Under the pieces are notes generated by a model that saw only the letters and a program-made list of their open reading frames with translations, made no database searches and was not told the origin of the DNA. From positions 91,953,030-92,017,029 of the forward strand of contig NC_052154.1 of the NCBI RefSeq assembly GCF_902713615.1: 64,000 nucleotides of DNA, read 5' to 3'. Both the position numbers and the translations under genes were made by a program. This document shows positions 25,744 through 28,120 of the stretch, piece by piece. The stretch is from Scyliorhinus canicula. Lineage: Eukaryota. The stretch's first letter is position 1. Each line of letters starts with the position of its first letter.

Positions 25744-26055
25744 CTGGGTCAGAACCAGTTACCAGGTGAACAGATATTTTCGGAGCCTGCAGCGTCGTAT
25801 GGGACACCAGACAAGTGTAAGGTGTTCCTCTCAGGACTGGCTGTGACTCATGCAGAACACTTGTAGCTTGATAGAGACCTGCTTTATTCAAACGTTTTGT
25901 TGTTTGAATCCCGGTTATAATCCTGCTTGAACCTTTGTACCACTGCAAAGTAACATCTTCCGGGTAAAAGTCCACTGTTTCACATACGAGATGAAGATAG
26001 ACGTTTGCATTTTCATCAGGCGTTTTCCAGAGTATGGTTGGAGTATGTGGAACAG
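25744..26055 (-). CDS. Exon 3 of a V(J)-C1 IgSF gene: C1-set constant domain
   Basis: Acceptor CTCCATTCAAG|CT, donor CCAG|GTAAGA; 312 nt, phase 1-1, open. Translation (A)VPHTPTILWKTPDENANVYLHLVCETVDFYPEDVTLQWYKG...GLYQATSVL...YTCLVSHTTL...DP carries the C..FYP..W and YxCxVxH C1 signatures. Confidence 0.92.
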
Positions 26056-26902
26056 CTTGAATGGAGTTCAGGGATAGTTATTAAGCAATGAATATATAGA
26101 AAATTAACACATCTCACAGCCAATAATTCCACAAAACGCAAGAGTGTTGTTTAATTATTTTTCAAAAATGTTAACAATGGTCTACCTCTACGTATTCAAT
26201 GATCTCTGAAGCAACCATGTATGTAAGGCTTTTTAAATCTCACAACCATCAGAACCAATATAATTTCTCGCAAACCGTGTATCAAATTCAAATGCCGTTT
26301 TGATTGCGATTTGGCAAATATGGCATCCAAGAACAAATCCAATCCCTAAGCAATACGATAAGTGAAGGTTTCTTCCGTTTATAATTCTATGGGCTCGTGG
26401 AGGGGTGTTGACCAAAATAGTCGGACAGCTGTACTTTCATTACAATGGTGTTGAATATTTAACTCCATCCAGAAAAAACAAGGTTGAATTTATTTCACTA
26501 CGATCTCACCTGAAAATATCTAGAGACCAGTATCACCCACGATAATTCCAGGCCAGTTAAATTCCGTAAATCATGGAATATTTCTTGAATCAGGCAACTG
26601 GAATGATCGTCTTGAAATTGTATGGATAAGTCTTCGGAAACAATAGAAAAACGGGCAACAAACGGCCGTTCACGTAATTTCACTTGGATGTTCTCAGGTA
26701 TTTGCACGAATGGCCTGATGAAGAATACTCCATAAATTCTCCCCATAATTATTTCGAAAAAAGCTGCCTCGAGTTCAATCCAAATAATACCATGTCGTAC
26801 AAGCATTATAGCTTGTATTTTAATAGTATTTTATGAGGAATTAAATAGTGCTTTACGGTAAACTAGAGGGACATCTCTGAGCAATGTCGCTCCTCCGAAC
26901 TC

Positions 26903-27224
26903 CACAGCATCCCTGCAGCGCAGAAGGATGTCATTTGGCCCATCGAGTCTTCGAATGAGCTACATATTTGCACAGTCCCATCCACCACGCCCAATCCCTT
27001 TAACCCCATAACCTAACTTGCAGATCCCTGGACAGTAAGGGACAATTTAGCATGGCCAATCGACCTAGCCTGTATATCTTTGGACTGTGGGATGAAACCG
27101 GAGACCCACGCAGTCACTGGGAGAACGTACAAACTCCACACAGATCGTGATTCCCGGCCAACATTAAATTCGTTTTCCTGGCGCTGTGAGGCAGCAGTGC
27201 TAACCACTCTGCCACCGTGCCGCC
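26903..27224 (-). mobile_element. tRNA-head SINE in the V-C1 intron
   Basis: gcagcagtgctaaccactctgccaccgtgccgcc is the reversed head; central domain present. Confidence 0.85.
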
Positions 27225-27594
27225 AACACAGTTAGTAATTTCCAAAACAACCAATTCTATTTTAAGATTAAGCCATGAAATGCGTTTCACTTTTCTTCGG
27301 TATAACCTCAACATTTAAAAAAAGGTATGTTTTGATAGGCTTCACACATGGTATAAACCGAAGCATCCCAATATCAGTTTTGGATTAGTTGAAATATTCT
27401 ATTGGGTCCCTGCATGCAATTTCCAAATTGTCAGCTTTTGGGATTGCCGAAATGTACCAAATATTATAATTTTCTGAATTACGTTAAAGTAACCAAATAT
27501 AGGACTAATGAAATCCACTTGACGCAATTCTGGTCGACCTTATATATATATTTGAGAGAATAATCCAAACATTCCACCCAACAGTGGTATTTAC

Positions 27595-27912
27595 CGTGAA
27601 CAACAAATGTTGATCCAGTTCCGTTATTCATCCTCGCTCTTGCTTCTTTGATACCGCAGTAATAAATACCGGCATCATGCAAACGTACATCAAGGAGTTG
27701 GAAGGTGCTTTGCCCTTTCCTCTTTAAAACATGCTTCCTCATGTCTGAAGTCGGTTGCATAAATACATTTTCGCCGAGTCTCCACCAGAAAATATTCACT
27801 TCTGAATTATCAGACAGAGGAGTGAATGCACAAATGATGGTAATATTTTGTCCAACCATCACAATCTTGTGTTGAGGTCTTTGCAAAACTTGAGTATCGT
27901 CATAACAATTAC
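27595..27912 (-). CDS. Exon 2 of the V(J)-C1 IgSF gene: V-set domain with germline-encoded J-like G strand
   Basis: Acceptor CCCCTCTTTCAAAG|GT, donor CACG|GTAAAT; 318 nt, phase 1-1, open. B-strand Cys (ITIIC), C-strand Trp (IFWW), DAGIYYC, then NGTGSTFVV. No RSS heptamer after the YYC. Confidence 0.93.
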
Positions 27913-28044
27913 CTTTGAAAGAGGGGAAGAGAGAAAACATACAATCAATCAATTGAACATTCAAGATCTGAATTACAATATCTTATAGTTTTGTTGGAAT
28001 AAACACTATCAAGGCTTCAAAATAAAAATTAATGCGACCGATAC

Positions 28045-28120
28045 CTGTGCTGATCATCCCCAGGATCAAGAAGGACTGAAGAAGAGCGCGAACAATCATA
28101 TTGGAGAAAGTAATAACCAT
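28045..28120 (-). CDS. Exon 1 of the V(J)-C1 IgSF gene: signal peptide
   Basis: MVITFSNMIVRALLQSFLILGMIST(G); alternative ATG at 28099; donor ACAG|GTATCG in phase 1, matching the V exon across a 132-nt intron. Confidence 0.85.

Follow-up and report, generated by a model that had tools for sequence, protein, structure and literature searches.

A non-rearranging V(J)-C1 gene of the catshark Scyliorhinus canicula and its place in a clustered family of probable membrane receptors in cartilaginous fishes

The window, a 64,000-nt stretch of the Scyliorhinus canicula genome (contig NC_052154.1, positions 91,953,030 to 92,017,029), lies on a 198.8-Mb chromosome and contains three minus-strand exons that encode a leader, a V-like domain and a C1-set domain. 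No other non-transposon gene was found in the window, where the remaining open frames are all of transposon origin. In the order of transcription, the features of the gene are as follows.

28121-28182, minus strand: 5' untranslated region at its minimum extent; the X6 RNA contig reaches 28182 from exon 1
28120-28045, minus strand: exon 1, with the ATG and a hydrophobic leader; 25 codons plus 1 nt, phase 1; donor GT at 28044-43
27912-27595, minus strand: exon 2, 318 nt, V-like domain; acceptor AG at 27914-13, donor GT at 27594-93; phase 1 in and out
26056-27594, minus strand: intron 2, 1539 nt, skipped in the X6 and X1 contigs; tRNA-derived SINE at ~27019-27226
26055-25744, minus strand: exon 3, 312 nt, C1-set domain; acceptor AG at 26057-56, donor GT at 25743-42; phase 1 in and out

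A reading made earlier from the sequence alone had joined three open phase-1 exons into leader, V and C1, and our model agreed with it base for base: all three frames are open and the splice sites are canonical. Exons 1-3 sum to 706 nt, or 235 codons plus 1 nt. The 235 codons of the sequence-only reading were thus counted correctly for these exons but do not make up a complete gene, as exon 3 leaves in phase 1 through a donor GT. The X6 RNA contig runs 248 nt beyond exon 3, into sequence that maps outside 22250-28200, and the orthologous proteins are longer; the three exons therefore represent only the 5' part of the gene, not the whole of it. The nearest proteins were from S. canicula and S. 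torazame, which bears out the shark origin guessed from the letters. The leader is identical at 24 of 25 residues to that of P0002, the S. canicula RefSeq protein, which comes from a sister copy of the gene.

Evidence from RNA came as contigs from three studies (X6, X1 and X2). The X6 contig (1016 nt) maps to 25744-26055, 27595-27911 and 28045-28182 and joins all three exons, and the X1 and X2 contigs support the junction of exons 2 and 3 and the end of exon 3, which X2 and X6 both place at 25744. All three contigs join exactly at the germline splice sites, so the splicing proposed from sequence was seen in RNA. They also match the germline junctions, in agreement with the predicted absence of junctional diversity, at a low depth that leaves room for rare variants. 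Repeat depth was very high over the SINE of intron 2 (27026-27224) in all RNA runs.

The domain assignments were consistent with the motifs from which they had been proposed. Exon 2 matched the Pfam models V-set (2.5e-6), Ig_3 (1.2e-7) and I-set (5.5e-5), and its motif YYC...NGTGSTFVV was confirmed. Exon 3, with the confirmed motifs FYPEDVTLQW and YTCLVSH, matched C1-set (9.8e-12) above the cut-off of that model, the C2-set models staying under theirs, so that the domain following V is C1-set, as had been suggested. The V domain and the J-like strand are contiguous: exon 2 takes in everything from the A strand to NGTGSTFVV and on to its donor site. A scan of 25000-28600 for RSS heptamer, spacer and nonamer found none at or within the V exon, as the claim of a germline-joined V(J) would have it, and the sole weak RSS-like match lay on the opposite strand, inside the intron 2 SINE.

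In an AlphaFold model (pLDDT 87.7) the V domain was short and lacked regular C' and C'' strands, with no strand at residues 45-58. The absence of these strands in the model indicates that the domain is a V/I-intermediate, not a full antigen-receptor V. The window gene and all its orthologues have one C1 exon, and a second C1-like exon was not found in the window by profile search, tblastn or blastn. A CPLLQFYPQD motif at ~25590 was considered as a dead second C1 exon and rejected, as the best E was 0.014 and the matches were scattered over both strands.

The sequence-only reading had been unable to assign an orthologue. We found a 1:1 shark orthogroup inside a large chondrichthyan family, consisting of P0001 (S. 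torazame), P0002 (S. canicula) and proteins of seven other sharks (Mustelus, Heterodontus, Heptranchias, Rhincodon, Chiloscyllium, Stegostoma and Pristiophorus), with E from 1e-72 to 1e-156. Exon 3 is 95% identical to P0001, and the orthologues of the seven other sharks (~330 aa) showed 55-67% identity. In a maximum-likelihood tree the window gene fell into a clade with the nine shark rows (support 100/100), the branching of which resembles the accepted shark species tree; the other catshark family members, P0049 and P0078, were placed elsewhere in the tree.

An exhaustive HMMER run, queried with the V exon, returned 62 cluster representatives at E ≤ 1e-10. All of the V-C1-type matches that were looked up (20 of 20) were chondrichthyan, and no non-chondrichthyan protein joined the family in this search. 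Members share the V signature WW[KR]xGE ... D[AS]GxYYC ... NGTGSxLxV and the C1 signature FYPxxxxxxW ... YxCxVSH, both of which the window exons carry (alignments A1 and A2). A family V profile scored 138.5 bits (E 1.3e-41) on the open frame of exon 2, a family C1 profile scored 135.2 bits (E 1.1e-40) on that of exon 3, and G97 and G99 of the V domain were invariant across 32 family members. In each species the members lie on one chromosome or scaffold, the cluster of Callorhinchus extending over at least 470 kb. The 10-kb flanks of whale shark and elephant fish members held further family members or nothing, and no non-family gene was found in them. Judged by these sequences, the family appears to be a clustered multigene family known so far only from sharks, rays and chimaeras.

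Outside the window, the orthologues show what follows the C1 exon. The whale-shark gene has leader, V and C1 exons, a membrane exon 7.3 kb downstream and then two tail exons. All five anchored orthologues have a tail with an ITIM (LxYAAL) and an ITSM (TEYAA[IV]), the latter 23 residues after the former in the Mustelus orthologue. Both long- and short-tailed forms are present among 70 family members, one short-tailed form having an arginine in its anchor. Some members have V-only isoforms (P0085 versus P0088; P0069 and P0081), and P0075, with two C1 domains, is the only such member of the wider family. RefSeq automatic names contradict each other within the family ('SIRP-like', 'tapasin-related-like', 'NCR3LG1-like' and 'Ig lambda-like' among them), with six unrelated names in all.

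Taken together, the exons of the window probably encode the leader, V(J) and C1 parts of a gene conserved in sharks, one of a clustered cartilaginous-fish family of membrane receptors with a non-rearranging V(J)-C1 layout. In other sharks the orthologue would be a type I membrane protein of ~330 aa, whose short V/I-type domain, with its J-like strand built in, would bind ligand and whose single C1-set domain would act as a spacer. Engagement of the ligand would lead to phosphorylation of the tail tyrosines and recruitment of SHP-type phosphatases, and cell activation would be damped. Inhibitory signalling by the orthologues is inferred from these motifs and by analogy with SIRP alpha and PD-1. 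The short-tailed members and the arginine in one anchor suggest that paired activating forms may also exist in the family.

The catshark copy in the window has a less simple status, as it lies at the edge of a duplication flanked by an assembly gap. The features concerned are the following.

17410-17509, unstranded: assembly gap (100 N) where two duplicated blocks join, 8.2 kb downstream of exon 3
1-17409, unstranded: duplicate block, 98.9% identical to 34341-51808 by self-BLAST; upstream flank of the sister copy
34341-51808, unstranded: the other duplicate block, upstream flank of the studied gene; transposons only (reverse transcriptase and esterase/endonuclease LINE frames)
18342-18415, minus strand: candidate exon 4, 74 nt with AG and GT sites; acidic and non-hydrophobic; part of the sister copy's RefSeq model

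The duplication thus consists of two 34-kb blocks, 98.9% identical, that meet at the gap. The leader of the sister copy lies ~6.2 kb before the start of the window, in agreement with the difference between 34341 and 28120. Candidate exon 4 was found by tblastn of P0002 residues 236-264, and its 25 codons correspond to P0002 residues 236-260; it has no counterpart in the orthologues of other sharks. Its distance from exon 3 is like that of the whale-shark membrane exon, but it is neither similar to that exon nor hydrophobic, and we rejected it as a membrane exon. Neither tblastn with eight orthologues, nor a profile of five tails in six frames, nor blastn with the whale-shark gene turned up a credible membrane or tail exon in the window, the best E being 0.7, within repeats. 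The protein of the sister copy, P0002, has no membrane anchor and a degenerate ITIM, which suggests that the catshark product may be soluble or decaying.

On the geometry within the window, we lean towards reading the window copy as an uncollapsed second haplotype of one gene, with a true 3'-truncated tandem duplicate as a sizeable second possibility. A stronger version of the latter, in which the window copy is a dead 3'-truncated duplicate without a function of its own, seems rather unlikely to us. It would fit the lack of membrane and tail exons in the window and the gap and duplication boundary 8 kb downstream of exon 3. It would also fit the four nucleotide differences between the window copy and the expressed form, all of which are non-synonymous, and the fact that the RNA contigs covering diagnostic site 27834 have the base of the sister copy and not that of the window copy. 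However, the three frames are open and every splice site is intact, the divergence of 1.1% is too small for decay to show yet, and the geometry suits an uncollapsed haplotype at least as well. The X1 contig, moreover, breaks off 2 nt before the variable site, which is what the presence of both variants in the X1 run would lead one to expect. The four non-synonymous differences are compatible with relaxed or diversifying selection, their numbers being too small for a test. A gap-flanked duplication of this kind may inflate gene counts at the locus.

Returning to the preferred reading, a conserved gene of a chondrichthyan V(J)-C1 receptor family, we compared it with the known systems that it resembles. 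Sharks have germline-joined IgL clusters, and the RefSeq name 'immunoglobulin lambda-1 light chain-like' would make the studied gene a conventional gene of this kind. Like Ig lambda, it has a leader, a joined VJ and a single C1 exon, and the best Foldseek E-values were to lambda and kappa light chains (3.7e-16, lambda), yet TM-scores to them reached just 0.42-0.47. The J-like strand reads N-G-T-G-S here and not F-G-x-G-T. In the models, the V domain is short and without C' and C'' strands, and the arrangement of the two domains is extended rather than bent. A light chain ends after one C domain, whereas here exon 3 goes on in phase 1, and three further exons follow in the orthologues, with the anchor and ITIM/ITSM tail. 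The same family, furthermore, has been given five other automatic names. A conventional germline-joined IgL gene is accordingly a very remote prospect, and the RefSeq label 'lambda light chain-like' is wrong. The light-chain likeness noted in the sequence-only reading stands as far as the Foldseek E-values favour lambda, but it is superficial: the extended V-C1 geometry fits SIRP alpha/beta best, and the orthologues are membrane proteins.

The SIRPs were the closest described proteins by fold and by features. The AlphaFold model of V-C1 (pLDDT 88.2) superposed best on D1-D2 of SIRP alpha/beta (TM 0.74, identity ~20%), SIRP clusters were the nearest named ones by language-model features, and a duck SIRP-like V domain was a remote HMMER match. 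In both systems the V domain is the membrane-distal one and has a J-like G strand, one or more C1-set domains come next, and ITIM-bearing inhibitory forms occur with short-tailed ones in one clustered family; P0075, with its two C1 domains, comes closer still to the SIRP layout. The studied gene could on these grounds be a cartilaginous-fish SIRP, co-orthologous to the signal-regulatory proteins of tetrapods. We consider this improbable in view of the ~20% sequence identity and of the HMMER search, in which the family remained confined to cartilaginous fishes. SIRPs, moreover, are V-C1-C1, whereas the studied gene has a single C1; its V domain is ~15 residues shorter than SIRP D1 and lacks the regular C' and C'' strands. 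The tail of SIRP has four ITIM-type tyrosines, that of the orthologues one ITIM and one ITSM. Our searches gave no described SIRP, TAPBPR or B7 gene as an orthologue.

The V domain of NKp30 is short and carries a GxG strand and NGT sequon, features that recur in the studied gene; both are non-rearranging V/I-type and multigene in sharks. A shark NCR3 (NKp30) family was reportedly described by Kinlein et al. in 2021, and the studied gene could be a member of it with an extra C1. The V-only isoforms of the family would fit such a membership, as would the variety of shark NCR3: eight divergent subtypes exist in the nurse shark (MT914154-MT914161; PMC12227049). The literature, however, treats NCR3 as V-only and MHC-linked, it is left out of the C-domain trees of PMC12227049, and NKp30 consists of a single V followed by stalk and anchor, without C1, whereas here splicing joins a C1 exon to V. 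Neither the V exon nor the family V profile had human NKp30 among its best 60 PDB sequence matches, and it did not figure in the best 50 structural matches either. Membership in the NCR3 family thus appears more doubtful even than a SIRP origin. In discussions of the antigen-receptor precursor, NKp30 and shark NCR3 are named among its relatives (PMC12227049, PMC10751288).

UrIg and UrIg2 (Flajnik et al. 2023, 2025) are likewise shark genes that do not rearrange: a separate exon encodes the leader, VJ occupies a single exon, and C1-type domains follow. Sequence searches with the C1 exon put the UrIg2 structure 9dmx among the top matches; it was missing from the best 60 PDB matches to the V profile. 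The secreted UrIg has three C domains and UrIg2 nine to eleven, in contrast to the one C1 of the studied gene and the ITIM/ITSM tails of its orthologues. Identity with UrIg or UrIg2, which requires VJ and at least three C1-type domains, was rejected on the single C1 of the window gene.

We tentatively put forward a broader proposal, to which we give less than even weight: that these genes make up an undescribed paired-receptor family of all Chondrichthyes, inhibitory and possibly also activating, with a germline VJ-C1 ectodomain. The family would be either a counterpart of the SIRPs or an independent surviving lineage of the VJ-C1 type ancestral to antigen receptors, and it would lie outside the MHC and the Ig/TCR complex of UrIg/UrIg2. 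The special relation to the pre-RAG ancestor suggested by the sequence-only reading is a conjecture. Word searches of the literature, which did not reach the shark NCR3 and PRARP papers, found no description of the family, and it may already have been described under another name. Non-rearranging genes with a joined VJ and a C1 are thought to be the source material for immunoglobulins as well as T-cell receptors, and few are known (e.g., SIRPs, NKp30, PRARP and UrIg/UrIg2). A large and old clustered family in sharks, rays and chimaeras would provide further outgroups for dating the RAG invasion. It would also be a sign that the oldest jawed vertebrates have an innate receptor system, hidden so far behind the names of public annotation.

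The remaining relatives were more distant. PRARP genes were reportedly described in the chicken by Fu et al. in 2019. By their descriptions, PRARPs and NITRs resemble the studied gene as germline VJ-type receptors, some with inhibitory tyrosine motifs, but both are known only from bony vertebrates, and NITRs are not known to have a C1 domain. The teleost NITR-like proteins P0130 and P0179 were remote V matches. PD-1 and PD-L1 appeared in the PDB search as weak V matches only, and a survey of the CD28 family reported no members but single-V ones. Multidomain proteins dominated the PDB profile searches, and no specific relative of the V domain stood out among them.

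The window gene lies on the minus strand, and 28120-25744 contains its leader, V(J) and C1 exons, as the sequence-only reading had modelled it, exact to the base and in agreement with splice sites, phases and Pfam domains:
28120-28045, minus strand: exon 1, start codon and hydrophobic leader, 25 codons plus 1 base
27912-27595, minus strand: exon 2, V-set, preceded by AG and followed by GT, 105 whole codons
26055-25744, minus strand: exon 3, C1-set, flanked by AG and GT, 103 whole codons

Splice sites were canonical in all three exons and every junction was phase 1, giving a spliced frame of 706 nt (235 codons plus one base). 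Exon 2 matched Pfam V-set (2.5e-6), Ig_3 and I-set being of similar strength, and exon 3 matched C1-set (9.8e-12). The A strand, YYC and NGTGSTFVV all lay in exon 2 with no interruption, and a heptamer/spacer/nonamer scan for an RSS found no signal at or inside this exon; both results support the earlier proposal that the J-like strand lies within the V exon with no RSS. Some 150 nt beyond the end of exon 3, a short frame at 25552-25599 (minus strand, CPLLQFYPQD) resembled a C1 B strand; a decayed second C1 exon at this site was not statistically supported. A G+C-rich minisatellite at 30741-31050 (a 20-nt unit in ~10 copies and a 12-nt unit in 4 copies), ~2.6 kb upstream of the start codon, yielded spurious open frames on either strand, long and rich in proline.

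RNA contigs from public runs of three studies (X1, X2 and X6) were mapped to 22250-28200 at low depth (3-7). The X6 contig (1016 nt) covered 25744-26055, 27595-27911 and 28045-28182, that is, all three exons and 62 nt of 5' leader; a further 248 nt 3' of exon 3 matched nothing in 22250-28200. The X1 contig joined 25911-26055 to 27595-27832 with zero differences, and an X2 contig contained the end of exon 3 at 25744, its remainder continuing elsewhere. The window-gene locus is transcribed, its junctions are germline-fixed and its message extends past exon 3. The check for spliced transcripts suggested with the sequence-only reading was thus borne out by exon junctions at germline splice sites in X6 and X1. 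Contigs over site 27834 showed the variant of the sister copy only, and the X1 contig ended two bases before this site, as graph contigs do at bubbles; expression of the window variant itself is neither shown nor excluded by the contigs at this site. Three SINEs of tRNA-derived type in and near the gene (23640-24040, 24640-25035 and 27019-27226, the last inside intron 2) attracted very high depth in all RNA runs and produced many false joints among themselves.

The sister copy belongs to a large duplication. Positions 1-17409 and 34341-51808 form 17.4-kb blocks that are 98.9% identical, which suggests that a 34.3-kb unit including the window gene is present twice. Two further features bear on the status of the window copy:
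17410-17509: assembly gap of 100 N, exactly at the end of the first block
18415-18342, minus strand: candidate exon 4, 74 nt, with AG and GT, translation identical to residues 236-260 of P0002, acidic and not hydrophobic

P0002, a 330-aa S. canicula RefSeq protein, differed from the window-gene protein at four residues, and the X6 contig differed from the window at four bases. We take these to be the same four sites; on that assumption all differences are non-synonymous. We infer the sister copy to be the source of P0002. With two blocks at a scaffold gap and ~1% divergence, an uncollapsed haplotype overlap is the reading towards which we lean; the same picture would arise from a real tandem duplicate that the assembler had broken. 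Beyond exon 3, the window holds just the 74-nt exon, then the gap, and no membrane or tail exon was detectable anywhere in the 64 kb. P0002 has no anchor. The final 55 residues show weak homology to the Mustelus tail (35% over 43 aa), with the tyrosine kept, the ITIM flanks lost and no ITSM. This anchorless form suggests that the catshark gene either yields a soluble product or is losing its signalling half.

The C1 exon led to a partial Scyliorhinus torazame protein (235 aa, 95% identity). This protein as query returned P0002, annotated 'immunoglobulin lambda-1 light chain-like', and one protein each, 311-337 aa long and 55-67% identical, in Mustelus, Heterodontus, Heptranchias, Rhincodon, Chiloscyllium, Stegostoma and Pristiophorus. 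Their automatic names (lambda light chain-like, tapasin-related-like, CD276 homolog, SIRP alpha-like, NCR3 ligand 1-like) contradict one another, a sign of an unnamed family. A maximum-likelihood tree built from 68 ectodomains placed the window gene with these nine shark proteins in a 100/100 clade whose branching resembles the accepted shark species tree, and other catshark family members fell in other clades. An orthologue, which the sequence-only reading could not assign, is therefore assignable, and the window gene looks like an old single-copy shark lineage. All five anchor-bearing orthologues continue after C1 with a short stalk, a hydrophobic anchor and a tail containing LxYAAL, which fits the ITIM consensus; T[EH]YAA[IV], 23 residues further on in Mustelus, fits the ITSM consensus. 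The anchor exon was skipped in two predicted orthologue isoforms. The whale-shark gene is laid out as leader, V, C1, a membrane exon 7.3 kb on and two tail exons.

An exhaustive HMMER search with the V exon against 1.84 billion cluster representatives gave 227 matches, 62 of them at E<=1e-10. About 70 collected proteins share the V signature and mostly the C1 signature too. All 20 V-C1-type matches looked up came from shark, ray or elephant fish; of ten weaker matches lacking the family signature, three were chondrichthyan (two Callorhinchus, one Heterodontus), the remainder including turtle pIgR-like proteins, a duck SIRP-like V domain and a teleost NITR-like protein. The wider family looks older than the shark/ray/chimaera split. 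Within a species, members occupy one chromosome or scaffold, spanning at least 470 kb in Callorhinchus. Long-tailed members carry one to several ITIM/ITSM motifs; there are short-tailed members too, one of which has an anchor arginine. Predicted isoforms (P0085/P0088, P0069/P0042, P0007 and P0009) skip either the C1 exon, which leaves a V-only form laid out like NKp30, or the membrane exon, giving a predicted soluble form that retains the tail. P0075, like SIRP, has two C1 domains. Long-tailed, short-tailed and V-only forms together match what is expected of a paired receptor family.

Modelled confidently by AlphaFold (pLDDT 88.2), the V-C1 ectodomain fitted SIRP alpha/beta D1-D2 best as an extended two-domain structure (TM 0.74, about 20% identity), followed by butyrophilins, CD276, PD-L1 and B7-H6 (TM 0.63-0.71, about 20% identity). 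Lambda and kappa light chains had the best Foldseek E-values but TM-scores of just 0.42-0.47, and SIRP clusters came first among named clusters in a language-model feature search. The V domain, modelled without regular C'/C'' strands, superposed equally (Z 13-15) on NCAM Ig1, VL, TCR V, CD79b and IgNAR V; NKp30 was absent among its best 50 structural matches. As modelled, it is a short V/I-intermediate type with a J-like G strand, in which both glycines are invariant in the family and the preceding asparagine nearly so.

The gene had been read as a light-chain-like, non-rearranging receptor. Its non-rearranging nature held (VJ in one exon, no RSS), but light-chain identity did not: the frame continues past C1, the orthologues are anchored signalling receptors and N-G-T-G replaces F-G-x-G. 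UrIg, with three C domains, and UrIg2, with nine or more, do not match the single C1 here. NKp30/NCR3, described as V-only and MHC-linked, does not fit a gene whose V exon is spliced to a C1 exon. The gene is of a known kind: non-rearranging VJ-C1 receptors with inhibitory tails, to which SIRP belongs. RefSeq already has a model for the gene, the name of which misleads. Literature word searches found no description of the family, the shark NCR3 and PRARP papers lying outside their scope. That the family is undescribed, chondrichthyan-wide and of real bearing on antigen-receptor origins is a tentative claim, held at rather less than even confidence.

The germline V(J)-C1 ectodomain, the splicing of its three exons and its conservation across sharks are established, as are, at the level of motif matches, the ITIM and ITSM of anchored orthologues. 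By analogy with ITIM/ITSM receptors such as SIRP alpha and PD-1, the V domain would bind a ligand and Src-family kinases would phosphorylate the ITIM and ITSM tyrosines. SHP-1 and SHP-2, the tandem SH2 phosphatases, could then be recruited to damp activation, as could SAP-type adaptors at the ITSM. An ITAM adaptor may serve as partner of the short-tailed relatives.

Apart from the gene, the window contains only transposons:
32721-33338, plus strand: DDE transposase fragment, PIF/Harbinger-type (DDE_Tnp_4, 3.7e-21)
42143-44759, minus strand: esterase-bearing LINE whose open frames encode GDSL-esterase, endonuclease and reverse-transcriptase domains; second copy at ~7382-10400

This LINE is present in both duplicate blocks, and a (GAG)23 microsatellite (33135-33204) follows the transposase fragment. 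The N-terminal 31 residues of P0009, the Pristiophorus model, match a repeat at 32316-32408 (plus strand), 41610-41702 (minus) and 7245-7337 (minus); the start of this model is probably a transposon-derived mis-prediction.
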